From Basidiobolus meristosporus CBS 931.73 (lineage: Eukaryota > Fungi > Basidiobolomycota): DNA of 64,000 nucleotides. Both the position numbers and the translations under genes were made by a program. Location of the stretch: NCBI GenBank assembly GCA_002104905.1, contig MCFE01000006.1, positions 1-64,000 on the forward strand, read 5' to 3'. How positions within the stretch are numbered: the first letter of the stretch is position 1; the number at the start of each line of letters is the position of its first letter. Below are positions 700 to 57,879 of the stretch, one piece after another. A model generated the notes under the pieces. The model was not told the origin of the DNA, did not search any database, and was given only the letters and a program-made list of their open reading frames with translations.

Positions 700-1915
700 C
701 TCAGGCGATCTTAAGGGAACATATGGCCTATATATCAAGCCTTTGTGGACAATGCCGAATTCAAGCAAGAGACTCAAGGGGTTAAGAGAGGTGTGCTGTG
801 GAGAGAGTACACCGATTTCCTCCTGGTGAGTTCTTGGCCAAATTACATAACTGACCTAAACCTAGCTATTTCAGCAAGAGAGACATAGCCTATCCCAACG
901 TACGCAATCTTTAGGAACGAAGCTCACAGAGATAGAGCAGCCGGCCGCTCTATGCGCCCAGTCCATTGTAGTGTTATTCCGTTTTATAGATATGTGACCA
1001 CAAAACCTGACCACCTCAGGGTGCGAGCGAGTGCGGATCTCCATACGAACGGCTTTTAAACAGCATCCTCAAAGGCGTGTTTCTCTTCCTCCGTCCACTC
1101 ATGGTCGATATATGGTGTTTCAGATGTCTTCCACTAATAAACAATGAGAACCCATTATTAAAAATAATGAAAAAAGGTGTGAAGCCGAAGCCAATATTGG
1201 CGCTCAAGTTTAGCTTACCAAGAGTATCTTCTGCCACTGTGTGTAAGCTAATAAAAATCAACAATTACAACGTTATCACCCAGGAATTTGGCACGCCGAG
1301 TCTCACCCGAAATATCGGAAGGGCCAAAAGCGGAACGTCTTCAGAACCGTGTTCCCCTCTCCCTCTACTTGAGTACGGTCTTTGCGGAGACGACCGCTAC
1401 AGTCGCATTGAATGGTTTGAGCCCAGCGAAGAAGAGCCAAATAGCGTATGGCTGTTGTTCTTTTTGGAATGAACAAACCTACTGAGGGCAATAGTCGCCA
1501 CAGGTATCGCATATGTGTAATATCTCAGTCAGATTGAGTACAACCTCCTTCTCTGTTACGATGAATTCGTAGCGAGCGATGAGAACCTCACGGACATGCT
1601 CGGGGACTGGAACAGGCGTAGCTGGGCTGCATCCGCCGTAGGCGTGTCTGGGACATCGTTAGGGCGGTGATACCATGCGAGGCGCACATGAGTGAAACCT
1701 CCGTTGGCTTTTTCTTTGTCATTGAGAGGCGCTGACGGTTTCAATGGGGACAGAAGCTGTATGATACGAGCGACTGAATATGGAGTGCAGCCCAGCTCGA
1801 TGAACAATAAACATGGTCTGCGTGAAAAAAATCGGAACCTAGTTAGATTTGACTTTAAAGGTCTCTGCAAGTATTGGCCTCGTCACCGTTCTGAATGGTG
1901 ATATAGTCGTTCATC
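700..1915 (-). pseudogene. Degenerate SNT2-like (BAH-PHD-ELM2-SANT) chromatin protein pseudogene with frameshifts and internal deletions
   Basis: Manual translation of the minus strand in shifting frames gives, in the expected order: DHVYCSS/LGCTPYSVARI..VRLAWYHRPNDV (BAH), VPEHVREVLIARYEFIVTE..CDTCGDYC (BAH end/PHD start), WPFRYFG then RLG.KF (ELM2 start), EWTEEEKHAFEDAV*/AVRMEIRTRSHPEVVRF (SANT), and a Cys-containing segment. Stops and frameshifts lie between motifs. Boundaries approximate. Confidence 0.6.
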
Positions 1916-2828
1916 GTTGTGGTCTGTTAACAAGCCCTCACGGGGCGGATAGCGGGGAAATAAGGATAGGGATGGTTAAACAAACCAAAGATAAAATCTA
2001 TGGGTATGAGTAGCAAATTCCCAATATACATATTAGAGAAGGGCATGGATATCCTACCATGTGGAAATGTGGAAGTAGAAGGACAGGACGCCGGGGAAGG
2101 CTTGGTCAACGAGAGTAGGTAACTGCGATTCGAACCCCGATATCCGGCCTTTACGCAGTACCTAAGTTCTCGCACTTGGCTTCTTGTACTTGGGTCAACC
2201 TCCCACGTAGCTGAAACAACCATGTTAACATGTATTTTATAGACAAAAAATGTAGGTATATCATGAGAGAAAAATAAACATCACAATAATAATACACAAG
2301 TCCTATATATAATCATACAGGGAAACGATCGAAAAACGCTGTCTCTCAGACACAAGGATTATACCCCACTACTAACAAAGCCATAAAAACCCTCAAATAC
2401 TATGTAAGTAAAACCTAGGTTAACGTCGCTCAGCTAATAACGGAGCATTAGTAACGAAAACACATGTGATGGTCGCTGGTATCAACGTAACAAACATAGG
2501 GGATCATCCTTCGTTCAAAATGGTCAAAGAGATAATGCCAAATAAAGGAAGCAAAGCAGAAAAAATGGGTATATTGCTTCTAAACATCTTGCCCAGTCCT
2601 CAATTACCCTTACAAACTGCATACACACTGATTTTTCGCACTACTACTACACACTTGACATACTTGGGTCGTCAAAGCCTTTTCAAACGACGTAGGTGCA
2701 GACAGTTTTATTGCTCAAAACTGTGACTTGACTGAATCGTTTGTTTGGTAGCCTAAAGATTGGTATTGTGCATAGATCGATTGCATACCTACAGCCCAAC
2801 ATGCGGGATTTTGTGCAAAAAACCGAAC

Positions 2829-4192
2829 TTAGATTTCAGCAAAAGCAATAGTTTCATTGATCGGGAGATGGACACCTGGATTAGTGAACTCCTGACCAAC
2901 CTGAACGTTGGCTTCTTTTCTAAAGACTAGGGCACACGAAGATCCACCGAAGTGGAACGTTCCTAGCTCTTGACCACGGTTGACATGCTGTCCTTCGTAC
3001 ACGGTGGCCTGGCAAGAGGAGATCTCGGTCATGCCAATGGCGATAAAACACATGAGACCGATATTCTTATTGTCGGCATCAATAAACAACAGTTGGCGAG
3101 CGGCGGTGTTGGCGAAGAAGGTGAGGGACCTCAAATAGGGGGGAACCTCGCCTTCAGGGGTATCTTCTCCGATGAGAGATGGTGCTTGGGCGAAGTAGGT
3201 GCCGGGAACGTCGACAATTTTCAGAACAGTCCCGCTCACGGGCGCGTGCCAGCGGTGGTAGCCGGTAGTGTTAAGGAAGGACTGAATGACAAGACCGCCA
3301 ACAAAGGAATCAACGGACTTGTCACCAGCGAGAAGGTGAACGAGGGAGTATGCTTCATCCTTGATGAACAGTTCGTCGGTCTTTTTGACTTCGGTCTTAA
3401 TGGCGTAGAGTGCTGACTCGCAGGCCGAGCTGATGCAGCGAAGGTCTTGAATATCACCGGTGGGGCGATCGATGGCGACGTCGCGATAGCGGCGTGTGAA
3501 AAAGTCTTCGTATGATGTAAAGCCCCAGGCAGGGGCATTCGGGTCACAAATAAAGACATCCCAGAATTTCCTTTCAGATTCGTATTTCTCCATCATTGCG
3601 CCAACTGCCTTATCGCTGAACCAGCCTCCGTTGTTGGCGTTCAGAGTCGAAGTTGACTCAGGAGACAAAAGGTACAATTCCCAAGTCTTCATCATCTGTT
3701 TGAAGTGGTAGTTGAGGGACTGCTTTGTAAATGCAGACAATCCGCCTTGGGTATTCATCACTCGAGCCATGATCATGTACATTGGTGGCCCAATGCTGCC
3801 AAAGCTGGGTGCCTTGCGGAAGATATCGTTGAACATGAGGAGCATCTCCTGGTAGCTTTTCGGCTAGAAAGGTTTGAGAACGTGCACAAATGCTAAAAAA
3901 ACTTCGCTGTACTCACAAATTCTGTCATTCCATCAAACATGCGCACAATATCGGTGAATACGACAGCGTCGCCCTCAATGAAAGCCTTAAACTCCTGAAT
4001 GGGCTCGAGAAGTGGCGGCATGTCAGGGGCAGTGGTATATGGTGTACCAGGGCCGGGCATCCTCTTGGCTTCAGGGTGAATCCTTTTGTGGAGATCGGAC
4101 ATCCAGTCATCGTAGTCTTTCTTACTTGCAGGAAGCCATCCAAACCGACGGAAGTCCTCTATGGAAGGACGTAGAGTAGTGGGTGAAGTCAT
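2829..4192 (-). CDS. PsiD-clade pyruvoyl-dependent decarboxylase (phosphatidylserine-decarboxylase fold; L-tryptophan decarboxylase-like), 436 aa, 2 exons (3917-4192, 2829-3863)
   Basis: Joining the two ORFs over a 53-nt GT-AG intron (3864-3916) gives a continuous frame ...DGMTEF|PKSYQEMLLMFNDIFRKAP.... It carries YHRWHAPV and the self-cleavage motif FHFGGSS, plus motifs I recall from Psilocybe PsiD (LEPIQEFKAFIE, GPPMYMIMARVMNT, VPGTYFAQAPS, PPYLRSL, IGMTEIS). Confidence 0.9.
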
Positions 4193-4399
4193 ATTGTTAG
4201 TTGGAGATGGAACAAGGGTTGTCCAGAGCCAACACCTTTATAGCATCTGGAGCAGGATGTCCTGAGCGGTGTCTGGCCCTTATGCAAGGCGGCCTATTGT
4301 AACTTTTTCTAAGGAGACATGATATTTCACGAGAGAATGCTGTAATACTACCCTCTTGGGAAAACTTATTCAAGTGTTCCCACAAAGGTTCCTTACACT

Positions 4400-5700
4400 A
4401 CTAGTAATGTACCAATACGATGCGTGTTGTACAATCTAAGCCACTATTATCTTGTGCATAACATCTAAAAAATGGTTTTGGTAAGTACCTTTGAAAGGCA
4501 TTTGTGTTCAAGCGGTTGGTGTGGATTGTTGTAGCTCATGGTACGGATAGAGATAGAGTATCGCTAATAGGTACTAAGAACAGGTTCATTCAAGAGGGAT
4601 TTCAAGAACTAGGTCAAAGGAGGGCTCAAGGGTATTTACCAGGAGCTGGGATCGATAACTAATAATTGATCTTTCTTTACCTACCTCGAACCTTTACCCT
4701 CGGCCCAGGCTTAACCAAGTGTGTACAATAGTGGGCACTAGAATTCTTAGGTAACGTTAACTGGCTTTCAGGATCCAACTGTAACATACTTCCCTTCTTA
4801 AATGGATTCTTCCCCACAAGAGTCATCAGTTGGACAACAAAACCGCACAGGTGTTTGTCCATTTGGCAATTTTTAGTCGATCTTGGTGTACAAAGTCTTG
4901 TTTCACAATTCCTGGTGGTGTTGATAGCTGATATGTGTAGGATGGTCGTTGTTCTTTTACAAAGTATGGCCCGCTCCAATGTGGCTCGAACATATTCCTC
5001 TTGTTCTGTACTAGAACCCATAATTCAAGACCGATCAGGTTATTGTCAGAATTCCTATCCTTGTCTTTGATTTGTTGTGCTTGACTGGCTAGCTTGTTGT
5101 CAACATCATAACAGGCATGGTCCATCTCTTCTGGTCCTCTTCTGCAAGACTCTTTGTAGTCCTCATTGATATCTAGGCCCCAAAGGTTTGGTGGGAGGGT
5201 ATTGCCAAGTATCATCAATTCTATGCCATATACCATAAAGAATGGAGGCTTATTAGTGGCACAAGCAATGCCTGGTGTGAGAATATGTCTCATCTATAGG
5301 TGCCTCTATGGACATATATGATGAGCATCTGACTTATCAGTCCATTAAGACTTTCACTAGCTCCATTGGTGTGTAGGGTGGTATGCTGATGTTTTTGGGA
5401 TGATCAATTGCATCTTTTTCTGGATTAAACTCAAGACCTTGTCAATAAAGTTTACACCTGCTGGTTGAGATTTCTTTTGACCTAACCCTAAGCTGTAACC
5501 TCAAGGAGTAACAGTGCCCCATTGCATTAGTCACCTAGAACAATGTGGATAGGTTGGATTTGCCCTTGTGTAATGTTTTGTAGATACTAATGTCTATGAG
5601 AAGATCAGCCATAGAAGGCCAGCAGAATCAGATTTGCACTATCTGCCTTGCAGCATACCTTGCAGTCAGCTTTCAATATATCAATTAGAAAACCACTGGA
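4400..5700 (-). mobile_element. Degenerate Ty3/gypsy LTR-retrotransposon integrase fragment
   Basis: ORF 4826-5293 contains the GPY/F-type integrase C-terminus (FEPHWSGPYFVKE..YTYQL..G..VHQDRLK). An upstream frame gives HTTLHTNGASESLNGLI, a decayed version of the HPQTNG..ER.N core motif. No LTRs identified. Confidence 0.7.
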
Positions 5701-5879
5701 TTCATTTTTTCATTATCACTTTTAATATGTTTAGGACTTTCACCCTAATGCCTCAAGAACAACTACATATTTTACCAAAATTATAATATTCAAGGTACTC
5801 AGCTATAGCTGTAGGGTTCACTCTAATACCATGGAAGTATTTTATTTACAGCTAAATAATCTGGCCTACATATTGACAA

Positions 5880-6215
5880 TCCCCAAGAGAAATCTCAAAC
5901 TAGGAATTTTTCTGATTTTTAGCTGGTATTCTGCTTGTATTCTTATGGTATGCTGCTTGTATTCAGATGGCATTTTTCTTTCAAATTTTCAGTTTCAACT
6001 TTTGGTGGAAAAAGTGAGCAGCTGATTACAAAACTTGGCATGAATGCTAGTTTACCTAGTCTCCTCCTGGAGAATATCTGCTTGGCAGCCCAAAAGCTAG
6101 TATCTGAGAACTCAGAGTTGTCAGCTTTGAGAAGCCTGAAATTTACCTTTTACTGTGTTGATATTCTGCTTGCCTTTTCTCAGTTTCATTTCTTAGAGGA
6201 TATGTTTGTATGTCA
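5880..6215 (-). repeat. Dispersed repeat, copy 1 (inverted relative to copy 2 at ~12650-12945)
   Basis: The reverse complement reads ...ttctcaaagctgacaactctgagttctcagatactagc...ccaggaggagactaggtaaactagcattcatgccaagttttgtaatcagctgc...cagaataccagctaaaa, which aligns by eye with the copy at 12.7 kb. Confidence 0.8.
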
Positions 6216-7907
6216 GATCTATTCCCTGGCACAATCCTAGTAAATAGCTCCTTGCACAATAGGATCAAGTGTATTGTCACATCTTATGCAAGTCATGCTC
6301 CATTTGGTGGTCAAGACTAACCATTGAAATATAAAGATGCATCTGGTAGGTGAAATCCTGCAGGCACTTGATTTAATGCACCCCATCCAACAATTGTTAT
6401 TTTAATCATACTATGGGTATTTTGAGCAATTGGCTTTACATCTAGTATAGCGGCTAAATGAGTCACTAGCTTAAATACTTTGTGTATAGTCTGCAAATTT
6501 TGGAATAGTATGTCTGAAATCCTGGCCTGGGTTTTCCAACAATACTTTTGCTAACTATGAGGTATTCAGGACATGATGAAAACCCAAAATTTCCAAAGGC
6601 CCCCAAGCTAGGTTCATATCCTCTTGAAGCCTTAATATAGGTATTTTTTTTGTTGACTTTGCCAAGATTTTAAAGTATAAACTTCATTTTACACTCAACT
6701 TATCATTCATTGTAAGCCTGACAATCTAGTAGATGTCTAAATAACTGCCAATAGAGTTATCTGTTTCCCAGAGACTGTTGTATCCAAGAGAAAAGTGGAA
6801 TTCTAGCGTTATCTGAGAAAGCAGGGAAGATATTGAAAAGAATGTTGAAAGAATTTTAGCAATAAAGGAAGTACTTGGTAGTGCAAGTATAACATATAGC
6901 TTTTGCTTCATAACATATTTTATGCAAAAGTAGTGCTCAAACTATTATGTTGCCTTGCAGGAACAAGCAAGAATTTCATGTTTAAAGGTCCCAGATGCTT
7001 GTGTGTCAAGTTTGGAGTTGTTTGGACAGCGCTGAGATGCTTTGTGTGCTGTAGGAGCTTTAAGGACATTGGAAGTGATTGAGAGACTAAGTTGAATATG
7101 TGCTTTATACTCAATGAACTATGGAATATAAGATTGGTATTTATACTTTTTCACAATCTTGGCAGTACAAGCACATAAAATATTTTTAGCAAGGTCCCAG
7201 AAGCCTGTGTGCAAAGTTTAGCATGCTAGGTGCCATAAGCTCTGGAGGTTTCATTACTTTAATTGGAAGCTGATGAGACTGGGGTTCTTCAGCATTGTTT
7301 TATTGAATTGCTGATTATACTCTTGGACCAGATATGTTGTATTGAACTTATAGAGCTTAGCACAGGCATTACAAGCTGCATTTGCTAGGGTGAAAGCCCG
7401 CAGAGACCAGTCACAGAATAATTCCCAGTGCATATTCTTGGAAATAGTTTCCATGTAATGCATTGTTGGTAGAGTTCTCACAAGATGGTTGCTGCTTTTC
7501 AGAAAAAGTAAGCTCAAACCTAATATTTACAATAACAGGCTCAGTAGAGCAAGTCATATATCTGTCCATCTCAAAGATCCTAGTTTTTAAGGTCATAGCA
7601 TGTTTTGTTGCCTCAAAGGTATTTGGCTTAGATTTAAACTGTTGCAAGATTCTAGGGAGTATTAAAGTTAATTTGAAGAACTAAAGAATTGCATGATATT
7701 CATTTGCAGCCTTATTGAGTACAAGTAGAGTACTTATACTATTAGAGAAGCTTTGTGAGACAAGGGATTCACAAAATCTCAAGATTTGTTGCAGGAAGCT
7801 GTGGTCAAAGTATGGGGGTTTTTGGATAAATTTGAAAATATTTATAACTATCAGACCTTTACTAATTTTCGGAATTTTGATAATATCTTATGGACTAAGC
7901 CATTGGT

Positions 7908-8843: not shown

Positions 8844-10330
8844 CTAAAGCTTCGCCTTCACCTGCACAAGCTCACTTCCATTCTGGAGCAGCTTGGCAGC
8901 GTCGTTAACCATGTTGTCCACAATCACCTTTGCAGGGAGAACCTCGTTAATGAGCGCGGCTACACGGCCAATCAGCCAAGGACGCGTCTCCATGAAAATT
9001 TCGGGGTGTTGCTGAAGGTCGTGCTCGTAGGGAAGAATACCCTTCGATGTGAGCTCCTTGATCTCTGTCTGGCGGTTGTTGTTCCTAAAATCTCAGTACG
9101 GTTAGGATGTCAAACACTGGCTATTTGTGAGAGCGTTTCTTACCAGTTATCGACATATTCTGTCCTGCGCACACGTAGAGGACGTCCAGTGTAGATAAGG
9201 GTTGTCACGGCGTCTTCGTAGCTTGCGCTAAGGAGTTCCTCCTTGTGCTTCTTTGGTGCGCCAGCTTCCACGCTGGCGACGAAGCGAGTACCAACCTACG
9301 AGAAGAATTGCAATTTTAATATAAATGTAATTAAATGCGCTTCTTTTTCTCAGTCAAAACATACCCAAACGCCAATCGCTCCGTACATGAGGTTCGCGGC
9401 GAGGCCACGACCATCATAGATAGCACCGGCGGCAACAACGTATACTGGAGCCCCGGTCAGTGGCGACTTGTGGCCCTTTACTGCGTCAACACAGGCGGGA
9501 ATGAGGATTGATTGCGGGATATCACCGGTGTGTCCACCGCCCTCTCCCGCCTGAGCGCAAATTAGGTCGACGCCCTGCTCGAGTGCCTTGGGAACATGCT
9601 TCGGGTGACCGACCATCTAAAATTCGTGCAAAAAATCATATTTACTAAAAAAGAAACATAGGAGTAGCCGATGCGGGTGCATACGTTCATGACAGGAATG
9701 CCAGCCTTATGTAAGCGCTTAACGACATGCTTTGGTGGAACACCGACGGCGCAAACGAAAAGGGAAGACTTCTCATCGATGATGATGTCAATAAGCTCGT
9801 TGAGCTGACCCTTTTGATAATCGTAGTTCGTCTTGCGCGCGCTACCACCGACTTGGGGAAGGAGAAGGTCAACACCGAACTTACCGTTGGGGTCCTTCAA
9901 ATGGGACTTGAGCTCGTGAATCTGCACAGATGGGTTAACAAGGTAAAAGCCGCAGCATTCACACTATACAATCACCTGAGAACGAAGAACTCTGAACAAC
10001 GAATATTATTATGTCAGTAACTGTTTAAAAGAAAGCGTTTAACGCGTAAACAAAGCGGTACGCACTTAGGAGTGTATCTAGTGCACAGAGTTAGCTCAAT
10101 GACTTGAAAAGTGCCTGGAATTGTTTACTTACCCATGACCACCAAGGACACCAATACCACCAGCATTTGTAACAGCCGCTACGAGCTCGGGACCTGCTGC
10201 AACGTTCATCTGACCAATATCATCAGCCTTCCCGAATGTCTCCAAAATTGAAAGATATACTTACGCCCGCAAGCATGATCGGGTGCTGAATGCCGAAGAG
10301 CTCGGTGAGGGGTGTCTTGATAACGGACAT
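8844..10330 (-). CDS. Nitronate monooxygenase / 2-nitropropane dioxygenase family flavoprotein, 350 aa, 8 exons, C-terminal PTS1 (AKL)
   Basis: Exons 10265-10330, 10133-10209, 10066-10077, 9976-9991, 9685-9921, 9365-9616, 9144-9295 and 8844-9084 sum to 1053 nt in frame. Motifs: HPIMLAGMNVAAGPELVAAVTNAGGIG, AQAGEGGGHTG, VVAAGAIYDGRGLAA, VWVGTRFVAS, TGRPLRV. Confidence 0.92.
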
Positions 10331-11699
10331 GGTTGCTTGTGTGAGGAGGGGAAAAGGTGTGGAGCGTAGTTAAGGTTCAAGAAAGAGAGAGCGTGGTCCG
10401 GTTTAAGTTGGTTAAGAGAAGACCCGGCTAAGTAGCGGACGGGGGCGGCACTGGTCAGAAAGCAGGTGAAACCGGCGCCCGGAATTACCGGAATTGCGGA
10501 GTAAACGAGGCCAACAGTTGGGCTCATGCCCCTTCCGTTGGCATCATGCCATCAGCCACCCAAGTACACTGTCTCGGGATTGGCTGCATTCAAACACATG
10601 AGATAAGTGAGATATGATATTAGTGCGCTATTCTCAGACGTTCAATATAACTTCCATCAGTAAGATCTAGTTACATCTTGAAGTCGACATTGGATATGGA
10701 ATTGAACATTACATTAGTCCTTAAAAATTAGCAATGAATGGACAAGAAAATGCCAGTCTTAAAGCTAATGGGAGAATTAAAGATGTCACCGGGGTGTGAG
10801 TTACAGAACAGTCATAATTATCATTACAGTGCAGAGATTAGGTGGTTAGCATTCAAATCAACACAAACAAGAAACTGGAGGAGTAGCAACAGTTGTGTTA
10901 CGATGCGGCATATTGACATAGTGATTCTCAATTGCAGCGGTGTTAATTACAAGCCGAGGCCGGAACTTTCGCATACGAACCCATTCGCTTGCCGTGGGCA
11001 GTTGAGCGTCCTCAACTTGATGACTGGTTTGAGTGGGGCAAGGAGTGAACAATGGGAGATAATTAGCCATTATATAGCCCATGGCAGACAATTCCGAGTC
11101 TAGGTCAAGTGGCTCGTGGAAAGGATATCAAGATATATAAGAAGCCGGCAGAACTTGAGTTAACTGTAGGAAAGTGTGATGGAAAAGTCAAAGTGGCCAG
11201 AATAGAAAATGCAAGTTGGATAGTTGATTACGGTGATAGTTAGGATATAGCGGGAGAAGTTTAAGGAAAGGTTAGTGACTTGTCAAGTGAAAAGTCGGGG
11301 ATCTTACCACTGTTGTGGCTGGTTACTCCTTATATAGGATATTGGCAGATATGCATTCATCCCAAGACAAGAATTCAATCGAAGTCTCCCGCAATACCCT
11401 CTGTCCTGAATCATATCAATATGTGGTGGCATTTCTATACCAGACATTATGGTCAGTAGAATCAAAATCATTGGTCAAATTGGGGGGAACGTGTGTCTGG
11501 CTGAGCTTTGGTTAGTTCTAAATACAAGCATGACCCCAGACTTCGGAAGAAAACGATGGTAGTGGCAACTGGTTGATCGTCTATTGCCACTATTACTTTT
11601 GTTTGTTGCAGCGGGAGGACAAATATCTGAAATGGAAAGTCAACTCCTATCGGCGAACCGCAGTTGTCCCGCTACAAAAGGAAGGAATGGCTACTCGGT

Positions 11700-14400
11700 G
11701 TCTTATGATTGCCTCACATGCTAGGAAATTCAGGTAATATCGGGTATCACGATGCATAATTAATTTACGCTGGTGATCACAGTCCAATGTTGGCAGTCAG
11801 GCTTTTTTGGAATCGCGTAGGTGGTTGATGCAGCATGTGTGGTTCCTTATAGGCTCATGGTTATTTCATTACTCAGTGGTGCAGTGCGATAAATGCCAGT
11901 TTTTTAACTACCCAAGCTAACAACAGTACTAATGGAGTTCAGCCGTATATCGATTTAGACATCATAAGACAATGTGGACAAGGGGACGAATCTCTTCACA
12001 TGTTACGATAATTGGTAGATTCTGAATAATATTGTTGCAATCTCAGAAACCGTCGAAACTCTACTACAAATTGTATGCTGACCAGCCTTCACGTTCTAGT
12101 TATATCAAGGCAATTTGAGTCTCATGATGACCTGTGATTCACGACTAAAACCAATGTGTTCTAGGTTCTCCCAGCAAATGTATCTTATGGAGAATTCTAC
12201 CAAAGAGGGGGCAATACCTTAGAATTACTGTCTATGTAGCCAATCATAGTAGTAATGCGCAAAATCACCTACATAGACAATCTGTTTACAACACAAGAAA
12301 AAAGCTCACAAGCCATGCCAGATTAAGTGTAAACTCATCTAGCGTATAATTCAGTAATTGTTTAAAATCGTTTTAAAATGGGTAACTCAAGTAGTATTAG
12401 TATGAGACAGAATCAATGCCCTGAATTTCTTGTGTCTTCAGATATCCCTATCTAATTTCAAAGGAATCTTCAGCACCACTGCTTAAGCAACTTTGATTTG
12501 GCAGTGTTCCTTCAGATGTGTCCCAATATAGTCCTTGTAAATGTATAATTTGTTTTTAAATGTTAACCAAATTGCACAGCCATCCAGGACCTTGCCTAGG
12601 ACCAAATAGCTATAAGAAATACAATGATCCCAGAACCCGTTTATTACTTTTCCCTAAGAAAAAAAATAAGAAAAGACCTGCAGGATACCATTATAATATC
12701 AGCTGAATTCCAAGTTTCTCAAAACTGACAACTCTCAATATCTCAGGTACTAGCTGTTGGACAGACAATCAGTCATATTTCCCAGGAGGAGACTGGGCCA
12801 ACTAGCATTCGTACCAAATTTGGTAATCAGCTGCCAACTACTTCCACCAAAAAATGCAGGTGAAAATTTGAAGGAAAAACACCAGCTGAACACCAGCAGA
12901 ATACCAGCTAAAAGTCGGATGAATTCCAAATTTGAGACACTTCATAGGGCTTTGTATATAAGCTCGTTGTTTGAGGAAAACTTCACTAATACACATCTCT
13001 GGAAGCCAAGCCATCCAAGGGGTGTTGATGTTTTTCAGAATTTCATCTGACTCTTGGAACCCTGCTTCAATACTCCCCTGATAATTTATGAATGAGGAAA
13101 TCGAGGTAACCAATGAGCAAGAGTGATCAGGTCCTCAACGTGGCAAAAAAACCACGAACTATCATAAATTTAATATGAAATAGAGCCAATCATCCCAGCA
13201 TTCTCGCACACAGGTTTATGATGATATACCGCATCAATCTCTCGATGTTAGGGGGGAGTTCTCAAGGTCCATTCCCCAATGGCCCAATCAACTAGCCTTT
13301 GAATCATCTTTCAAGTTGTGTCTGTGAAAAAGAAATTTCTTGTTTAACTCGAGAGCCAAGCATGGATTAATAAGCCTCACATCCATTTCTTATGCGTACC
13401 AGACTTTCCAAAAATGGTATCTCGGTCTTCTTGTACAAGAATCCAGAAGCCACACAATTTTGGGCATGCACGTAACATGGAGCGATATCCAAGTAATCGC
13501 TACATATCCTAGGAAATCCCATCAATCTGAACAGGTGCAACTAGAGAACGGCCAATGAATACATGGAAACAGTGGAATCTTGGTGCAAGCTGACACTTAC
13601 TTCCGCTCTGTAAGGACCAGATAATAATGACATGTCCTAATAATTAGGATACACCAGAATACCCAAGTGAAAATCTATACTTCAACAGAAAATTCCCATG
13701 ACAACAACACCTGAAGAGACCTGCGAATCAAAGGTGTCGGAGAGATATATTGATATGGTGGCTAGCAGGCGAACTTGTAAGGCAACAATTCCTGTTCAAC
13801 CTCAACCTAACGGAGCCTTCACACATCTTCTGAATCAATATGATGGTAATGAAAAAAGCAGGCCAAGGAAACCGGTTCAACTAGCATGCCCAAGTCTGAA
13901 CGCTGTAATGGTAAGATATCAATAATGATTGATGTGTTGGTTTATCGACGTTAAATCTCCCATTAATAAGATCTATTGCAACACTATCTAAATCCTCATG
14001 TGAGAACCATTTTCGGAGAAATACACCATATGGGAAATGTGACACTCATCAAATCCAGGAATGACGAAATGGCAAGCAATAATGTTGTTGACATCTGTTC
14101 ACCCCTCTGGAGTTCGATTGACAATCAGTTTGAAGCATACAGTTTATCACAGAACCCCATCATGGCATCATCCTATTCTCAAACGCAACATATTGCCCTC
14201 AACCACGGAAACCCATCACTTTCCAAAAATCCAAAAGGTGTGGTTGTGGATGTGGATGTGGTCTAGGGGCCGAATGGTTACCTGACCCATCTGTGCTTCT
14301 AAAGTAGCCAGAGTCTTATAATTGGGTAAGCTAACATCACCACTGTTGATCTAGAGTGTACCTGAAGTCTACCATTGGTAGCTATAAAACAACATTGAGA
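11700..14400. other. Gene-free decayed repeat/pseudogene-like tract
   Basis: No coherent ORF and many in-frame stops; contains repeat copy 2. Origin cannot be assigned by eye. Confidence 0.35.
12650..12945 (+). repeat. Dispersed repeat, copy 2
   Basis: ttctcaaaactgacaactctcaatatctcaggtactagc...cccaggaggagactgggccaactagcattcgtaccaaatttggtaatcagctgc...cagaataccagctaaaa, same family as 5880-6215. Confidence 0.8.
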
Positions 14401-20400: not shown

Positions 20401-22187
20401 ATGTCCGGAAGTTCGAGTGTGAACAACCAAACATCTGTTGCATATGGTCGCCTTGAAAACCTGACCAAAACTCTAGGGGCCTCCATGAGAAGACCTGCGA
20501 TACCTAATACATCCAGCAATGGTAGGTTCAATCACGTACTTGGTCGATGTTCATGGATCTAAATACCCTTCCATCTTCAGTGATACCCTGGAACAAGCAA
20601 TCATACGTCAACAAAACCCAACTAAATCCAGTCTACTTTCTTCAGCGCAGCGCTAACGTATTCTCAAACAAGATTGCCGTCAAGATGGACGAGCTGACCT
20701 ACACATACACAGAGCTCCTTGAGAGAGTTCACAATCTGGCTTATGCTCTACGCCACGAAGGAATTCAAGCCGGCGATAGGGTGGCTTATCTATCACCCAA
20801 TGTTCCTGCATTGTTTGAAGGCCACTTCGGGATACCATGTCTAAGAGCCATTCTAGTAGCTATCAATTACCGTTTGAAGTCTAGCGAGATCGAATATATA
20901 TTGGAACATTCCGGCAGTAAGATTCTCTTCGTGGATTGCGATTGCTACTCCTTGGTATCCCATCTGGAAGGGAAATTGAAAATCATCCGAGTTGACAGCA
21001 GTGGTCGTCAAGATGATCCCTATGAGCGATTCCTAGCCAATGGAAATACGTTGAATCGTGGTTGGGAAGAGTTGGATTTAATTGGCAATGAGGATGATAC
21101 TATTAGCATTTGCTATACAAGCGGCACTACAGGTCGCCCCAAGGGAGTCATGTTTACTTATCGTGGGGCCTATGTCAGCGCATTAGGCAACTCACTAGAA
21201 GCTGAGTTGAATTCCGAATCGGTAATGATGTGGACCTTGCCTCTTTTCCATTGCAACGGTTGGACATTTCCCTGGGCAATGATCGCAGTCGGTGGGACCA
21301 ACGTTATGGTCAGAAAAATGGACTACGGCTACATCTGGAAAATTCTGTTGAAAGACAAGATAACGCATTACAACGGAGCGCCAACCGTTCAGATATCGAT
21401 AGCGAATCATCCCTCTGCGCATAGATTGCCCAAACCAGTTAAAGTAACCGTAGCAGGCTCATCGCCTTCACCAAATCTTATCGCTAGCATGAAGCGATTG
21501 AACCTTATACCCGTACATACCTATGGCTTAACAGAAACTTACGGCCCTTCACTTGTATCTCGTTGGAAACCAGAATGGGAAGCACTTCCTGAGCATGAGC
21601 AAGCCAGGCTGTTGGCACGACAAGGCCATAATTATTTTGTCACCGAAGAAACGAGAGTGGTCAATTCAAAAATGGAAGATGTTCCATTTGACGGTAAAAC
21701 CTTGGGAGAGGTTGTAATGCGAGGCACTATGGTTATGAAGGGGTACTTCAATGATCCCAAGTCCACCGAGGAAGCGTTCAAAGGAGGCTGGTTCCATTCT
21801 GGGGATATTGCAGTTCGCCATCCAGACGGGTATATTGAGCTACGAGATAGGAAGAAAGATATAATCATAAGTGGTGGTGAAAACATCTCCACCATCGAAG
21901 TGGAGCAGATCATTAATGAGCACCCTGCAGTACTTGAGGTTGCCGTAGTCGCCATACCAGATGAACAGTGGGGAGAAAGGCCCAAGGCATTTATTCGTAT
22001 TCGAGAAGGAGCTCAAGTGACCGAGGAAGAAGTCATAGCATTTTGTAAAAAATTCATGGCTGGCTACAAGTGTCCCGCTAAAGTTGAGGTGGTCCAAGAT
22101 TTTCCCAAAACAAGCACTGGGAAAATACAGAAATTTGTTCTACGTGCCAAGGAGTGGGAACACTTGGGTGCCGTCAAAATCAAATAA
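20401..22187 (+). CDS. AMP-dependent acyl-CoA synthetase (short/medium-chain, AAE-like); first exon 20401-20521, intron 20522-20580
   Basis: YTSGTTGRPKG, HCNGWTFPW, YGLTETYGP, GWFHSGD, DRKKDIIISGGENIS, PKTSTGKIQK. The upstream exon splices in frame. Confidence 0.93.
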
Positions 22188-43573: not shown

Positions 43574-44098
43574 ATGCATTTCTTACGTATCATTGCTATT
43601 TTCTCTTCCCTGGGAGTATTCCTCCAAGCCTTACCTCTACGTGACTTTAGAACGAAAGACTTGGCATCAGACAGATTTCATGATCTGGCTGAAATACGCA
43701 TCACGAAAGGTGATGGAGATGACCATAATAATGATGGAACTGGTGGTTACCTGGATTTCCAATTCAAGAATGGCCAATGCACTGATTGGGCAGACGCTCG
43801 TTACTTTGAATTGACTGGTCACCATATAGATTGGTCTGGTGATGCTTCATCCTGGCCTCGAAAGGCCAGGAAATCTACAGGTTGGGTAGTATCAGAGAGA
43901 CCTCAAGTCCCATCTATTATAGTAATTCCGCCAAGAGCTCAAGGTACAGGGAGTCCAGGACATGTTGCAATTGTAGAGGAAATAAATTCGGATGGTACCG
44001 TATATACAAGTAACTTCAATTACAATGGTGGCCCTTACAAAAAAACTTTTGCCAACTTCCATACCGATGACGGAGTATATTTCATATGGCATGAGTAG
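43574..44098 (+). CDS. Secreted CHAP-domain (Cys/His amidohydrolase-peptidase) protein, intronless, 174 aa
   Basis: Hydrophobic signal peptide; GQCTDWA (catalytic Cys), GDASSW, GHVAIVEEINSDG (catalytic His), SNFN. Confidence 0.9.
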   Translation: MHFLRIIAIFSSLGVFLQALPLRDFRTKDLASDRFHDLAEIRITKGDGDDHNNDGTGGYLDFQFKNGQCTDWADARYFELTGHHIDWSGDASSWPRKARKSTGWVVSERPQVPSIIVIPPRAQGTGSPGHVAIVEEINSDGTVYTSNFNYNGGPYKKTFANFHTDDGVYFIWHE

Positions 44099-47175: not shown

Positions 47176-50100
47176 ATGTTGAGTCTACACAACGAAGAAC
47201 CCAACACAGGTCGGGATGAGGCATTAGTATTTCCCTCATCTCAACCAAAGGAGACCAACGGATTAACGTTTTCGCCAACGTTTCATTGCGTCCAAGAAAA
47301 AGTGGAGCACATGTCCTTGTTGATTCGTCAGGTACATACCCAACAGCAAACTTCAGAAGATGCTGTTGTTGAAGAGATTCGAGATCTCCTATTGGAGCTT
47401 CAAGGCTGTTTACCCCAGTCAATTGAAGCAGGCTCTAAGCGTAAACCAAAAGAAGCGGTGACTTTACAGGAGCAGACATCTCCTGAGGCTTTCGAGGATT
47501 ACACTCTGGCTAGGGAGATTTTGAAACAAAGGGTGAGAAATATTCGACCGCTATTGAATGACTTTGAACAAAGTTTTGGTCTGTTAAAATCGAAAACTGC
47601 AAAGGATACCAACTTGGAGTATCCATCTGCGGCGGCGAAAATCGATGGAATCGAGAAGTCACTCGAAATCGAACGTAAGAGAGTGAACGGCCAACTTACG
47701 TCGGGCGAAAAATACTTGGGACGAGTGGAAATCCTCGAACGAGAGGTTTTGAGTAAAGTGGCGGCAATAGAATCTCAAATCATGAGTAATTCCACCTTAA
47801 TAGAGGCTGACAAGTCCTTGATTGAGGATCAATTTACGCTGTTCCACGAAAGTTTCAAGTCACTAATTCATGTGAAAGAAATTCCTGAGCCAGAGTATCC
47901 ACCACAATCTCCGAGTCTACCATCGTTACAAGAAGATGTAGAGTCGGTGGAATCTAGCCACAGGGAGGTGGAGCTCATTGAGGCTGCGCAACGTGAAGAC
48001 GAGCTCACAAATACTATCCTTGTTTTGAACCAACAATTCGAGGAAGTCCAGAAACAGCTCTTTGAAAGCCAGCAGCACGAGACATTGCTTCAGAGTAGTT
48101 TTACAACAATCCACGCTGAAAACGTACAGCTGAATCAAAAGAATGAAGAGTTGATGAGAGATATCAGTGAAATGGAGAAGAAATATGCCGAATCACTGCT
48201 GGAGGCTCAATCACTTCAGTCTAGTTTTGAAAATGAGATTTCCATTTATAATGACAAAGTGATGGAGCTTGAGGAACAACTTGGGAACACTCAGATTTGC
48301 CTGAAGGAGTACGAAAATCACGAAGCCCACTTTTATTCTATGGCTGGAGCTTGGAATGCCGAGTTCAATGATATTAGAAATGCCCTTAGTGCAGCTAGCT
48401 GCAAAGAGATGCTTCTCGATTCGTTAATCTCTACCATGTTTTCTCTTCAAACTGAAGAAATTCAAGACGAGGAAGCTGAGACCACCTCCAATGATACCGT
48501 GACCATTGAAGGCCTAAATCAGCTGTTGGAGGAATTGAAGTCCAGCTTAAAGGAATCTAAGGATAGAGAGGAGTCGTTATCACTCATTAATCATAAGATG
48601 AATACTGAGTTGGAAGATGGAAGGATTCACCTCCAGCTAGTGGTTGAACACGCGGAAACCCTAGCAGACAAACTTCAAAAAGCCAATATTGGTCAGTCGT
48701 ACATCGATTCTGTCCATGAAAAGCTAAGAGATAGAGAATCGATAATAGCCAACCTTGAAGAGCAAATCTCTAACTTCGGCGCAAAAGAAACCGAGATGAT
48801 CGATCAAGTCCGAGTTCTGTCGGCGGAAATCCAAAATCTACAACAGAAACTGTCAGATCTGAACAAAGAGCGAGAGCAAACAATTACCCGTATGGTAGAT
48901 AAGCACGAGCTTCAAGACTTGCAAGAAGAGCTTCTCAGGACCCAAGAAAAATTAGGTACTGCCGAGGCTAAGGAGCTTGAGCATAATCAAATTGTTGCTC
49001 AGCTGAATTTTGAGCTTGAAAAGACGAAGGGTGTGCTTGACAGTGCATTTAAAAAAGTGGAGTTGTTTGACGCGACCATCCGGGACCTTAGCCTACAGTT
49101 AGAGGATTCTACAGCCAACGATATGGAGAGTGCGGATATTGTTAATCTACGGTCAGAGTTAGATGAGACCGTACTGCTACTTGCCCATTCAACTGAGAGA
49201 GAAGCGGAGCTTGAAAATACTATATCACAGCTTCGATCAGAGCTTGAAAGATTGGAGAAAGAGACACTGACCATAAGGAGCATTGGACAGGAGGAGAAAT
49301 CTGACCTGGATTCGAGTGAGGTTGAAATGAATGAAGACATGATGCTAAGCACTCTGTATGAGCTTAATCAAGAGTTAAACTCAGCCAGACAAGTCCAGTT
49401 CAAATACGAGTGCACAATCAATTTACTTGAGTCGGCAATTAGGGATAAATCGTTGTTTGAGGAGAGTCAGTACTCGCGTATTTACGAGCTTCAAAGAGAG
49501 CTGGAAGGGTATGATCACAAGGAAAAAGAATACCTGAAAGCTATGTTTGACTCCAAGTCAGAGCTCGAGAAAAAGAACCAACACTTGTTGGAATACGAAA
49601 CCAAGACACGTTTGCTAGAAGCGTATATTAACGAAAGCCTAGTACTATCCGAAGAAAAGGACAGCACTATCTCACAGTTAACGGAGGAACTTGCTACTGC
49701 CGAGATAACAGAAAACGAACATCGCAAATACTTGTTTGATGTCATCGAAGAGCTCAACCAAGTAACACTAACACTAGTGGAGCAAGAGAAATCAACTTCC
49801 TTGTTCGAATCATCTGTTTACGAAAAACTATCAGAGATCAAGCAGTTGAGCAATGCTCTCCCATCTGAAGAATTCGTATATGTTTCTCGGGCCGATTTGG
49901 ACTCTGTGAAAGAACGAGTTTCTGAACTTGAATCAGCAATTGACGCCCTTCGGGATGTTGTTGATTCCAAGAACCTGGAAATCCAAAATCTTCAGAACGT
50001 GCGTCTTGACCAAAACTCTAGCTTGGAGGAGCTTAATAAGGCATTTGCAACATTCATTCGCTCCCTCAAGAAGTATAAGGTGACCATTCCCAGCGAGTGT

Positions 50101-52308
50101 GAAGAGTTAGTTGCCCGTGAAAATGGCTCAGTTTCATCAGGTTTTGACGCCAAGAAATATATCTCTTCTATAAATGCAGTGTCAGTCGCGACAGAATCTT
50201 GGATCGTTGAAAAACAGACGTACCTCGGGTTGAAGGAAGCTGAGCTGGCCGAGTTGACGAAGACAACCGATGAACTACAACAGTCCTTGATAATTCAAAA
50301 GCAGCAGACGGCTGAGCGAGAGGCGCTTGTGATTCTTTTACAGAAAAGGGAGCACGAGCGTGTGGATTCAGGATCATCATCAAGCCCTACCACAAATGGT
50401 CAGGAGATGAATAGGAGCATATCCGCCGATTCTGTCGACTCTGATGTTGGTAGAGATGATTCAGCTTTAGCACATATCGATACAACTCACATCATGATTC
50501 CTGAGAAACTGGAGGCCATTGATATCAACAACTCAAGAAATAGCGTGTCGAGTCTTGATCACGACCGTGATTCTGCCGTAGCTCTAGATGATGAGTCAGA
50601 TGGAAGTGAGAACCGAAAGGCGCTTCCTTATTCGACCTCGGATTTAACCAACAAGTTGGCGGAGGCAAAGGCGCAAATACGCATTATAAAGGCTTCTCGT
50701 AGAGACATGGATGATCAATTACAAATATTCAAAAGCAAATTGAAGGACACCCTGGAGAAATTGGTTATTTATGACATTAATCCAGAATCTCTGGAGGTTT
50801 TCGTAACTGATATCAGTAGCACGCTGGAAGATCCTACCTCTCACATTGGAGACATCATTACATGCTTAGATAATCCCAAGCTTATTCTAGACACCAAAGA
50901 GGAATCTCGACGATTAACCTTTGGAAATATATCCGACAATACCACTACAGGTGATTTGAATTCAAAGCAGAGCGTAGCAACAAGAGGTCGCGCTTCTACT
51001 ATTTCTGGTAATAGTGTTCATGAAATTTCTAAACTCAAGAAAGACCTCAGCCTTTATGCCTCTGAGGTTGAGACTCTGAAGCTACAAAAGGAAAATTACG
51101 AAAAACAATGTCGCAGTTTCCAAGAAAACATCATGACATCGCAGACTCGGGAGGGTAAGCTCAATAGAGAAGTCCGAGAACTTCGGTCACGACTGGAAGC
51201 TCATAAAGTTGAGTCGATGAATGCCCTTACCGCACTTCAGGCGAAATATCGCGAGTCACTAGCTGAGGTCGAAGCCAAATGCAAACAACAGGTCGAGGAA
51301 TTGGAGAAGGAGCTATTCGTTGCCAAAAAACGAATCATTCGGCTTAAGGAGCAAGTCAGCTCAACGGAGAAAGTATGTGCCGATGCAGTATCTCTTACTG
51401 AACAATTAGAGACTGAATTAGCGCGTACCTGGAAAGAAAAGCGAACTGCAGAGAAACAACTATTGGAGTCTCAGCAACGATGCGAGGACTTGGGTAAGGA
51501 TCTTAGAGCTAAGGAGTTGGAGCTGATTTCACAGAAACAGTCCTACGATGCCAAGATCAAGGATATGGACCTGAAAATTCGTGACAAAGTGAAATCAATA
51601 ACAATCGCCCGCAGAGCAACAATTGTTAATTCTCCTGAAAAAAGAGGAAGCTTCTATCAACAACTTCGGAGCAAATGGACTGGAGGTGCTATTGATGAGT
51701 CTTACACCAGCAATCCGAAGGCCGTTCAAGAATTAGAAGTTCGTTTCCAAGATGAAGTGGATATGCACGTGGCAACCAACAGGTTGCTCCAGTCTGAATT
51801 GGCTGAAACTCAAGGGAAGAATGCCGAGTTGGAACAGATTAAGGAGGCCATCGAGACTCAACTCGCTGAATTACGCATCAATTATGATCAATCCGAAAGA
51901 ACTTTGGCTAAACTCAGGCGCGAGGCTGATGAAAATCAACGAGCCACCTTAGTTTCTCTTCAAAGAGCTCAGACTGAAAAGCAAAGCTCAGCACGTATCG
52001 AACTGGCAAATATCCAGGCCGAACGAGCATCTCAACAGCGAATCATATCTGAGCTCAAAAAGGAGTTATCCAATTTGCGTGATGAACAGCATGAAAGAAT
52101 GAAGGAATTGACAAGTGCCAAACAAGAAATCGAGGTTTTAAAGAGACTTTCAAATTCTGACGAAAATGAAGGAGTTTCTTCAATACTGGAGGTTCTCACT
52201 AGAGAAAAACTGATTTTGGAAACGAAAGTCAATGAGCTGGAAACCGAGTTAGATGATGTCTTGACGAAGAACGTGGATCTTGCAATGCAATTAGCCGCTA
52301 TCAAATAA
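47176..52308 (+). CDS. Uncharacterised 1710-aa coiled-coil protein
   Basis: Single uninterrupted 5.1-kb ORF, E/L/K/Q-rich heptads with Ser-rich breaks; no catalytic motif recognised. Confidence 0.85.
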   Translation: MLSLHNEEPNTGRDEALVFPSSQPKETNGLTFSPTFHCVQEKVEHMSLLIRQVHTQQQTSEDAVVEEIRDLLLELQGCLPQSIEAGSKRKPKEAVTLQEQTSPEAFEDYTLAREILKQRVRNIRPLLNDFEQSFGLLKSKTAKDTNLEYPSAAAKIDGIEKSLEIERKRVNGQLTSGEKYLGRVEILEREVLSKVAAIESQIMSNSTLIEADKSLIEDQFTLFHESFKSLIHVKEIPEPEYPPQSPSLPSLQEDVESVESSHREVELIEAAQREDELTNTILVLNQQFEEVQKQLFESQQHETLLQSSFTTIHAENVQLNQKNEELMRDISEMEKKYAESLLEAQSLQSSFENEISIYNDKVMELEEQLGNTQICLKEYENHEAHFYSMAGAWNAEFNDIRNALSAASCKEMLLDSLISTMFSLQTEEIQDEEAETTSNDTVTIEGLNQLLEELKSSLKESKDREESLSLINHKMNTELEDGRIHLQLVVEHAETLADKLQKANIGQSYIDSVHEKLRDRESIIANLEEQISNFGAKETEMIDQVRVLSAEIQNLQQKLSDLNKEREQTITRMVDKHELQDLQEELLRTQEKLGTAEAKELEHNQIVAQLNFELEKTKGVLDSAFKKVELFDATIRDLSLQLEDSTANDMESADIVNLRSELDETVLLLAHSTEREAELENTISQLRSELERLEKETLTIRSIGQEEKSDLDSSEVEMNEDMMLSTLYELNQELNSARQVQFKYECTINLLESAIRDKSLFEESQYSRIYELQRELEGYDHKEKEYLKAMFDSKSELEKKNQHLLEYETKTRLLEAYINESLVLSEEKDSTISQLTEELATAEITENEHRKYLFDVIEELNQVTLTLVEQEKSTSLFESSVYEKLSEIKQLSNALPSEEFVYVSRADLDSVKERVSELESAIDALRDVVDSKNLEIQNLQNVRLDQNSSLEELNKAFATFIRSLKKYKVTIPSECEELVARENGSVSSGFDAKKYISSINAVSVATESWIVEKQTYLGLKEAELAELTKTTDELQQSLIIQKQQTAEREALVILLQKREHERVDSGSSSSPTTNGQEMNRSISADSVDSDVGRDDSALAHIDTTHIMIPEKLEAIDINNSRNSVSSLDHDRDSAVALDDESDGSENRKALPYSTSDLTNKLAEAKAQIRIIKASRRDMDDQLQIFKSKLKDTLEKLVIYDINPESLEVFVTDISSTLEDPTSHIGDIITCLDNPKLILDTKEESRRLTFGNISDNTTTGDLNSKQSVATRGRASTISGNSVHEISKLKKDLSLYASEVETLKLQKENYEKQCRSFQENIMTSQTREGKLNREVRELRSRLEAHKVESMNALTALQAKYRESLAEVEAKCKQQVEELEKELFVAKKRIIRLKEQVSSTEKVCADAVSLTEQLETELARTWKEKRTAEKQLLESQQRCEDLGKDLRAKELELISQKQSYDAKIKDMDLKIRDKVKSITIARRATIVNSPEKRGSFYQQLRSKWTGGAIDESYTSNPKAVQELEVRFQDEVDMHVATNRLLQSELAETQGKNAELEQIKEAIETQLAELRINYDQSERTLAKLRREADENQRATLVSLQRAQTEKQSSARIELANIQAERASQQRIISELKKELSNLRDEQHERMKELTSAKQEIEVLKRLSNSDENEGVSSILEVLTREKLILETKVNELETELDDVLTKNVDLAMQLAAIK

Positions 52309-56377: not shown

Positions 56378-57879
56378 ATGGATCTTAGCAAGAAGAGCAA
56401 AATTTTAGGAGCTACAGAATGGTTGGCCCTGAGTGCAAAAAATTTGGTGGTGAACTCGTCGTGGAATCCTCTAGTTACCTTTGGTACCAGTCTTCTAAAG
56501 AATTTCTATACTTTCTACTAACGAAGGCGATTCTGTAGCCCGCAACCTTGTCCTGGAGCTTATGAGCAAGATTGAAAATGGGCATATCTGTATAATGACA
56601 AAAGACTATATCTACGAATATGGTACTTGGAAGGAGGGAAGTGATATGAACGTGAAGGTCAAGGTTCTTGATGACAAATTTTGGATCCGTTTATTGATGC
56701 TAGGAGATTTGGTAAGTATATCTAGTATGATGAGCAAACAAGATGTGCTAACACTCACTTAGGGCTTTGCAGAATCCTATATGTACGGTGAGAGCACAGT
56801 CAACGATTTGGTATCTCTCGTTAAGGTATCCACTGTTGTTTTCGTCTTCATTTGGAACCATATTCTGATCTCTGTGGTCTCAGCTTTTTGTAGCGAACCG
56901 CGAAATACTGAATGATGTACAAACAAAACACTCTACAGCAATGAATATTTTCAACTCGATTATCAACTCGCAGTTTGTTAACTCCATTGCGAACTCTATT
57001 CATAACATCAGTGCTCATTACGACCTAGGAAATGACATGTTCTCTTCGTTTTTGGATGAGACGATGACTTACTCCTGCGCCATATTTGAAAATGAACAGG
57101 AAAGCCTCAAAGATGGACAATTACGGAAACTACACACTATGATTAGAAAAGCTCGGATTACATCTGCAGACCATGTCCTTGAAATTGGGACCGGTTGGGG
57201 ATCATTCGCAATCGAAGCTGTCAGGCAAACCGGCTGCAAAGTTACAACATTGACTTTGAGTATTGAGCAGAAAAAATTGGCAGAAGATCGGATTGCTGAA
57301 GCTGGCTTCACTGACAGTATCACGGTACTCCTATGTGACTACCGTAATATTGAGGCCCATCATCAGTTTGATAAGATTGTTTCAATTGAAATGATCGAAG
57401 CTGTAGGCCACGAGTTTCTACCTACTTTCTTCAAAACGTGCGATCAACTGTTGAAACGGGACAAGGGGATTTTGGCTTTGCAGGGAATCACCATGCCGGA
57501 GTCAAGATATGACAACTACTGCCATTCGGTTGATTTTATCAAGAAGCACATATTTCCGGGCGGTCATTGTCCTTCTGTGACTGCATTGATCAATGCCGCC
57601 AACAAAGGTTCTGAAGGCCAACTGATTTTGGAGAATATGGAGAATTTTGGACCCCACTATGCTAGAACTCTCAGATTATGGCGTCAAGAGTTCCTGGCTT
57701 CCTACGACGAATTGATTGAAAGTAACCAAAACCCTGTCTATGATGACGTTTTCAAACGTAAATGGGAATATTACTTTGCCTACTGTGAGGGGGCTTTTAT
57801 CACCAAGACAATCGGGCTTGTGCAGATGGTGTTCACAAGAATCAACAACACAGAATTTCTAGAAGGTGTACCCCTCTGA
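56378..57879 (+). CDS. Cyclopropane-fatty-acyl-phospholipid synthase family SAM methyltransferase (Cfa/UfaM-like), 449 aa, 4 exons
   Basis: Exons 56378-56483, 56527-56711, 56763-56825 and 56884-57879 are in frame. Motifs: NISAHYDLGNDMF, MTYSCAIF, VLEIGTGWG, DKIVSIEMIEAVG, FIKKHIFPGG, HYARTLRLW, WEYYFAYCEGAF. Confidence 0.95.

Follow-up and report, generated by a model that had tools for sequence, protein, structure and literature searches.

We analysed positions 1 to 64,000 of contig MCFE01000006.1 of Basidiobolus meristosporus CBS 931.73 (64 kb, referred to throughout as the window), which carries on its minus strand, at 2829-4192, a gene resembling psiD of the psilocybin pathway (hereafter the psiD-like gene). 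Our reading, which we consider probable, is that this gene encodes a functional and expressed pyruvoyl-dependent decarboxylase of the tryptophan decarboxylase (TDC) branch, and that it was gained as intron-bearing genomic DNA from an Agaricomycete near the Pleurotus, Moniliophthora and Ceratobasidium paralogues. By taxonomy the host belongs to the Basidiobolomycota, outside the Dikarya, in agreement with the non-mushroom source that a first-pass annotation of this DNA had supposed. The features of the psiD-like gene are listed below.

3917..4192 (minus strand): exon 1, with the ATG at 4192; codons 1-92, including the codon for Trp19
3864..3916 (minus strand): the single intron, 53 nt, phase 0, GT..AG, lying between ...MFDGMTEF and PKSYQEML...
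2829..3863 (minus strand): exon 2, codons 93-436 (344 codons), followed by the stop codon at 2829-2831
3597..3860 (minus strand): PF12588 (PSDC) domain, residues ~94-181, Pfam E 2.8e-25, including Ile116, Pro118 and Tyr121
2889..3509 (minus strand): PF02666 (PS_Dcarbxylase) domain, residues ~211-417, Pfam E 1.6e-33
3255..3257 (minus strand): His295, the first His of YHRWH, which aligns with PsiD His296
2937..2954 (minus strand): HFGGSS, residues 396-401, with self-cleavage predicted by alignment at Gly399/Ser400 and Ser400 as the predicted source of the pyruvoyl group

The first-pass annotation had described an intact, spliced gene of 436 residues with HFGGSS and YHRWH, and this description was borne out by the splice model and by a Pfam domain search run on exon 2. 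The spliced product has 436 residues and zero internal stops, every motif that had been listed is present in the translation, which contains GPPMYMIMARVMNT, FLNTTGYHRWHAPV, GTYFAQAPS, PPYLRSLTFFANTAARQ and HFGGSS, and K493DRAFT_201776 of B. meristosporus CBS 931.73, labelled in UniRef as a PsiD-like domain protein, matches the product with 100% identity. The combination of PF12588 and PF02666 in a protein of this length is that expected of the TDC clade (~420-450 residues), and both the GGSS self-cleavage motif, a TDC signature (PMC6121855), and the catalytic His of YHRWH are present as sequence matches. The closest solved structure by sequence was Psilocybe cubensis PsiD (PDB 8ZIA/8X4Q, E ~1e-115), whereas bacterial phosphatidylserine decarboxylase (PSD) structures matched only at E 3e-7 (PDB 6L06/7CNW). 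Canonical PSDs (E. coli Psd, represented by the same two PDB entries, and yeast Psd1/Psd2) share with the psiD-like protein the pyruvoyl-forming, self-cleaving PF02666 fold and the Gly-Ser cleavage, but they have an LGST motif, whereas the psiD-like protein has GGSS, an N-terminal PF12588 domain and an aromatic pocket, and its similarity to Psd is distant. Therefore, as had been proposed from the motifs, the gene is of the PsiD type and is not an ordinary PSD gene.

The psiD-like gene is transcribed and is spliced as modelled. In the public run X3 (same study, another sample) we found a contig of 1223 nt in which 2862-3863 is fused directly to 3917-4112 with 0 mismatches, such that exactly the predicted 53-nt intron is omitted. 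The word depth of this contig was 611, an Illumina adapter was present at its end, and the flanks adjoining the gene were without coverage in X3. The exact intron skip, the gene-only coverage and the adapter end indicate that the contig is cDNA; a search for RNA runs found none listed. Because the contig skips exactly these 53 nt without a mismatch, the gene is expressed and the splice is real.

The relationships of the psiD-like protein were evaluated within the family defined by PF12588 with PF02666, which comprises 2520 cluster representatives at E<=0.001. Among the 120 best matches, compared over exon 2, the nearest named proteins were from Agaricomycetes, namely Moniliophthora roreri (74% identity), Pleurotus ostreatus (73%) and Ceratobasidium (72%), and the identity to psilocybin-cluster PsiD was 57% for P. 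cyanescens, 55% for Panaeolus and 54% for P. cubensis. The nearest relatives of all were two metagenome proteins, P0002 (84%) and P0003 (82%), encoded on the Joint Genome Institute (JGI) metagenome contigs L001 and L003. In JGI the two contigs bear the names Ga0596954_0003985 and Ga0596954_0031779 and come from samples 3300073844 and 3300073938. A metagenome scan for closer relatives gave a best match of 70%, and none nearer than the genes on L001 and L003.

A maximum likelihood tree of 68 rows (LG+C20 PMSF, with six distant members of the family as the root) united the B. meristosporus protein with P0002 and P0003 (support 100/99). This trio was sister to Pleurotus (99/79) and was nested successively with Ceratobasidium (95/86), Moniliophthora (98/94) and Paramarasmius (100/99), within a 43-row subclade that includes marasmioid, omphalotoid, phalloid and Xylariales sequences. 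The 43-row subclade was in turn sister (95/91) to a 7-row subclade containing cluster PsiD, Athelia and Mycena vulgaris, and together the two make up a 50-row TDC clade on a long stem of 0.96 (100/100). Three alternative placements of the trio were evaluated by the approximately unbiased (AU) test, and all were rejected: outside all Dikarya sequences (delta log-likelihood 109, p 7e-82), with the PsiD/Athelia/M. vulgaris subclade (76.5, p 1e-4), and with the three cluster PsiDs (144, p 6.6e-7). On phylogenetic grounds the gene is placed within the TDC clade that contains PsiD but not among the psilocybin-cluster orthologues, because the AU tests reject grouping with the cluster PsiDs of Psilocybe and Panaeolus. 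The first-pass description of a PsiD-clade homolog thus holds for the broad TDC clade and fails for the narrower one, as the gene belongs to the sister subclade. Since it nests with strong support among sequences of a distantly related donor group and the vertical topology is rejected, the gene is best described as a lateral acquisition from an Agaricomycete and not as lineage-old.

The paralogues of P. ostreatus, M. roreri, Moniliophthora perniciosa and Ceratobasidium share with the Basidiobolus gene the subclade, a lone intron in the same position and the pocket residues, including Thr at the position of PsiD 292. They are uncharacterised and appear in UniProt as 'L-tryptophan decarboxylase PsiD-like domain-containing protein'. 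They differ in belonging to Basidiomycota hosts and in often forming multi-copy or tandem families, whereas the Basidiobolus copy has no companion from B. meristosporus among the 120 best matches and lies beside transposon debris in a non-Dikarya genome. In M. roreri, psiD-like genes stand in tandem at 4037-5412 and 9769-11168 of locus L005, the tree includes six distinct M. roreri and two M. perniciosa sequences, and on L001 the intact gene is preceded, 2 kb upstream, by another psiD-like copy (4902-5635) that is degenerate. Within the donor group, the psiD-like family tends to duplicate locally.

The intron and the base composition of the psiD-like gene were also compared with those of its relatives and its neighbours. 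The site and phase of the intron are common to M. roreri (53 nt, after codon 92) and P. ostreatus (69 nt), and also to the second intron of P. cubensis psiD (49 nt) and the metagenome genes on L001 and L003. Because the site is shared with Agaricomycete genes, the gene appears to have moved as genomic DNA and not as a processed copy. The G+C content at third codon positions (GC3) of exon 2 was 0.60, versus 0.40-0.48 in eight of the nine other open reading frames (ORFs) of the window that were scored (0.52 in the ninth); that of Agaricomycete-type homologues was 0.59-0.73. The ratio of nonsynonymous to synonymous substitution rates (dN/dS) against the nearest relatives, P0002 and P0003, was 0.08-0.10, by which measure the gene is under purifying selection.

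As to the source of the two metagenome contigs, their GC contents are 48% (L001) and 54% (L003), and a carboxylesterase adjoining P0002 on L001 has named matches only in Agaricomycetes (Hermanssonia at 64%, Amanita, Marasmius, Agrocybe and Gymnopilus), with no Basidiobolus match in that search. These Agaricomycete-only neighbour matches and the GC values speak against P0002 and P0003 as Basidiobolus paralogues; judged from such sequence features, the contigs most likely derive from an unsampled Agaricomycete near the donor. Within Basidiobolus, no B. ranarum protein was found among the 120 best PsiD-like matches, though the proteins of that species are in the database. In run X4 (another study, same species label), compared with 1000-6900 of the window, no contig matched the gene at >=90% and only repeat fragments (~6035-6068) were found, although these contigs are no proof of absence; the result could mean strain-level absence or divergence.

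The DNA around the gene has the look of native Basidiobolus DNA. In each of the DNA runs X1 and X2, one independently assembled Logan contig of ~13.6 kb traverses the psiD-like gene into both flanks and extends past the start of the window. The region upstream of the gene is AT-rich (37% GC) and contains a weak integrase remnant and a high-copy repeat at 5728-6121, for which the Logan word depth was 2000-4400 compared with 96 in the surrounding contig, that is, 20-45 times the contig depth in X1 and X2. Because the contigs join the gene to this high-copy repeat, the psiD-like gene is embedded in this genome's own repeats. Farther along the same 268,249-bp contig, the urease at 61044-63617 (minus strand) has its nearest matches in B. 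ranarum (79%, 69% and 68%), followed by a B. meristosporus paralogue (67%) and then by Mucoromycota (64-66%). The window as a whole has a GC content of 41.8%. The urease kinship, the contigs spanning both flanks and the window GC are those of a native recipient locus, and contamination or chimerism is unlikely.

The urease is also of interest in its own right: it is single-chain, and there are at least two paralogues in B. meristosporus and at least three distinct ones in B. ranarum, numbers that fit extensive gene duplication in Basidiobolus.

The probable chemistry of the enzyme can be approached through P. cubensis PsiD, in which the residues of self-cleavage and catalysis are Gly402/Ser403 (cut between the two), His296, Leu290 and Phe398, and the indole pocket is formed by Leu112, Pro114, Tyr117, Phe289, Val292, Tyr338, Leu339, Met373, Thr374 and Ile376 (PMC11929908). 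The same work found His296 to be needed for self-cleavage and activity, the H296A mutant being dead, and Trp27 to be autoinhibitory (PMC11929908); in the 2025 structures, position 292 moves onto the indole ring. By alignment, of the 15 pocket and catalytic positions, 13 carry the same residue in the psiD-like protein, among them Thr371 and Met370, the pair that binds the indole NH, whereas the outgroup family members deviate at a minimum of five of these positions; in its pocket, too, the protein is thus of the TDC clade. The two changes are a conservative one, Leu112 of PsiD to Ile116, and that of Val292 to Thr291, with Thr being found in 41 of the 43 subclade members and in Athelia. The autoinhibitory Trp27 of PsiD aligns with Trp19, within exon 1.

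By analogy, a PsiD-like mechanism is the best supported one. The proenzyme would cleave itself between Gly399 and Ser400, aided by His295, with Ser400 turning into the pyruvoyl group; L-tryptophan would then bind through a Schiff base, CO2 would leave and tryptamine would be released. Trp19 of the N-terminal helix would probably block the pocket and so act as an inbuilt brake. The conserved residues make tryptamine synthesis likely, and the expected product would be tryptamine or a close arylalkylamine. Psilocybin is not the expected product because the gene lies outside any psilocybin cluster.

The surroundings of the gene were searched for partners of the psilocybin pathway. A tblastx comparison of P. 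cubensis psiM, psiT, psiH and partial psiK DNA (locus L008) with the 64-kb window gave nothing at E<=1e-3, and a Pfam search of 16 larger ORFs of the window and four exon pieces of a nitronate monooxygenase (NMO) gene, described below, gave no P450, APH or Methyltransf_10. Linkage to a psi cluster is thus lacking within the window, and the position outside the known cluster context that the first-pass annotation had assigned to the gene agrees with both searches. When the Basidiobolus gene is compared with P. cubensis psiD (PDB 8X4Q/8ZIA; Fricke 2017, Reynolds 2018, Meng 2025), the two are alike in having PF12588 with PF02666, 436 and 439 residues, GGSS, the catalytic His, the 13 of 15 pocket residues, a Trp of the N-terminal autoinhibitory type and the site of a phase-0 intron. 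They differ in that the P. cubensis gene belongs to a psiM/psiH/psiK/psiT cluster and encodes Val292, whereas the Basidiobolus gene stands alone, encodes Thr and has a non-Dikarya host.

With regard to the origin of the gene, it might be proposed that an ancient fungal PsiD-like gene was inherited vertically and lost in almost all non-Dikarya lineages, and the large size of the PF12588 + PF02666 family would allow for this. We regard such a history as extremely improbable: placement outside the Dikarya is rejected (p 7e-82), the protein is 73-84% identical to Agaricomycete proteins versus 64-66% for the native urease and its Mucoromycota matches, and B. ranarum is absent from the 120 best matches. 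Contamination by a basidiomycete, or chimerism in the assembly, would account for nearest relatives that are all of Agaricomycete type and for a GC3 unlike that of the neighbours. Such an artefact is very unlikely in view of the two independent 13.6-kb Logan contigs that cross the gene into both flanks, including the high-depth repeat, the urease of Basidiobolus/zygomycete type on the same 268-kb contig, the window GC of 41.8%, the transcript from the same study with 0 mismatches, and the fact that no known fungus is closer than 84%. There are several points that weigh against acquisition of an expressed tryptophan decarboxylase gene from an Agaricomycete. The organism behind L001 and L003 is assigned by one neighbour gene and GC content and not by a marker gene, and the synonymous divergence (dS) to these nearest known relatives is ~1.2, which points to a donor outside the lineages sampled or to a transfer that was not very recent. 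Run X3 had its kind guessed as 'DNA?', the opposite of what its spliced contig indicates. The assignment of tryptophan as the substrate has conservation of the pocket as its one line of evidence, and no characterised enzyme of the 43-row subclade was found in the literature searched.

This last point bears on a rival that keeps the same origin and changes the chemistry, in which the enzyme would act on a different amino acid or on a modified tryptophan (for instance 5-hydroxy-Trp, Phe, Tyr or N-methyl-Trp), or would have gone back to lipids, and the product would not be tryptamine. The Thr at position 292, which is Val in cluster PsiD, and the acceptance by PsiD itself of several ring-substituted and N-methylated tryptophans are consistent with it, as is the lack of a characterised subclade member in the literature searched; nor was a characterised PsiD-like enzyme found there from outside the psilocybin producers. 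The 13 of 15 identical pocket residues, with Thr371 and Met370 among them, speak for tryptophan, and the GGSS signature in place of the lipid-PSD LGST type and the E values of 1e-115 to PsiD versus 3e-7 to bacterial PSDs speak against a lipid, such that we consider a different chemistry rather unlikely. The remaining rival is that the gene encodes a genuine PsiD of psilocybin synthesis, the entry enzyme to a pathway whose genes are scattered or have gone unrecognised in Basidiobolus and related fungi. Membership in the TDC clade that holds PsiD, the retention of the PsiD pocket and the report of psilocybin from Massospora without psi genes could be cited for it. However, the AU test rejects the cluster grouping (p 7e-7 and 1e-4), no relative of psiM, psiT, psiH or psiK is present in the 64 kb, the gene arrived laterally from a subclade that is not that of psilocybin, and Basidiobolus is not closely related to Massospora, in which no PsiD orthologue was found; this rival is highly improbable. 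In Massospora, orthologues of PsiD, PsiK, PsiM and PsiH were all sought and not found (Boyce et al. 2019). The Basidiobolus gene, as a lateral arrival, therefore says nothing on Massospora psilocybin, which the first-pass annotation had mentioned. Because it came laterally from mushrooms, it is no stand-in for an ancestral entomophthoralean pathway.

The presence of this gene and its putative origin by horizontal gene transfer (HGT) have been known since 2018. Figure 3C of Reynolds et al. 2018 (PMC6121855; Evol Lett 2:88) is a RAxML tree of TDC with 'putative HGT branches', and its legend, the sole mention in that paper, lists B. meristosporus beside Eutypa lata (Xylariales) and Phallomycetidae. 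The branch most probably represents the same gene, because only one B. meristosporus protein is among the 120 best matches. We found no mention of the B. meristosporus homologue in the literature beyond Reynolds et al. 2018, and the study of HGT and secondary metabolism in Basidiobolus by Tabima et al. 2020 mentions no decarboxylase. To the published one-line observation the present analysis adds the gene structure, the shared intron, the transcript, the mapping of residues on the 2025 structure, the AU tests, the composition contrast, the closer environmental relatives and detail on the donor lineage. These additions firm up that observation and open no new question.

Along this part of the window the order is SDF transporter, psiD-like gene, transposon debris and NMO gene. 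The last of these resembles the psiD-like gene in composition.

~8847-10330 (minus strand): NMO gene with six exons (51-88 residues each), PF03060 (exon 4, E 3.5e-11), separated by 4.6 kb from the psiD-like gene, on the upstream side of the latter

The GC3 of this NMO gene is 0.55-0.66, like that of the psiD-like gene and unlike that of most window ORFs scored, and the two genes may have been transferred together. An ESM Atlas look-up with NMO exon 4 returned only unspecific NMO clusters, largely from bacteria, whose taxonomy was of no use here, and at the loci of M. roreri, Pleurotus and the metagenomes no NMO adjoins the psiD-like genes. A second, inverted copy of the repeat, at 12775-12952, is 81% complementary over 132 nt to the copy at 5728-6121, from which it is 6.7 kb distant; the two copies flank the NMO gene on both sides.

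The larger ORFs elsewhere in the window encode an acyl-CoA ligase, a phospholipid methyltransferase (PEMT) domain protein, the urease, an HlyIII-family protein and a polysaccharide deacetylase. The acyl-CoA ligase ORF (20547-22187, plus strand) is intronless and encodes an AMP-binding protein of 546 residues for which the nearest ESM Atlas clusters are all bacterial; it may be a bacterial-type gene of the kind for which Basidiobolus is known. The ORF at 43574-44098 (plus strand) encodes a CHAP domain (PF05257, E 2.4e-15), which is a peptidoglycan hydrolase module usually seen in bacteria and phages but present here on a fungal contig. An uninterrupted ORF of 1710 codons at 47176-52308 (plus strand) had no Pfam match, and at 56941-59856 an ORF for a methyltransferase like cyclopropane-fatty-acid synthase (PF02353, E 8e-80) adjoins an ORF for a protein like FAD amine oxidases.

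Taken together, these results do not support the idea that early-diverging fungi harbour a hidden psilocybin pathway, and they are of no help in explaining the psilocybin of Massospora. The protein is instead an uncharacterised member of an enzyme family that is used biotechnologically for tryptamines, and its substrate range is of practical interest. Basidiobolus transits the gut of amphibians, reptiles and insects and is dispersed in dung, and one could imagine that with this laterally gained enzyme, which is under strong constraint, it makes tryptamine or a derivative that acts on serotonin-type receptors of a host or invertebrate, with effects on gut transit or behaviour, and that the NMO arrived together with the decarboxylase and may modify its product. 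We hold this to be quite doubtful; if true, it would form an ecological parallel to the tryptamine-producing gut bacteria and to the dung/insect hypothesis for psilocybin. Basidiobolus has earlier been noted mainly for gene gain from bacteria, and the psiD-like gene would be a clear example of a gene that crossed from one fungal phylum to a distant one, its source being a mushroom-forming lineage and its recipient Basidiobolus.

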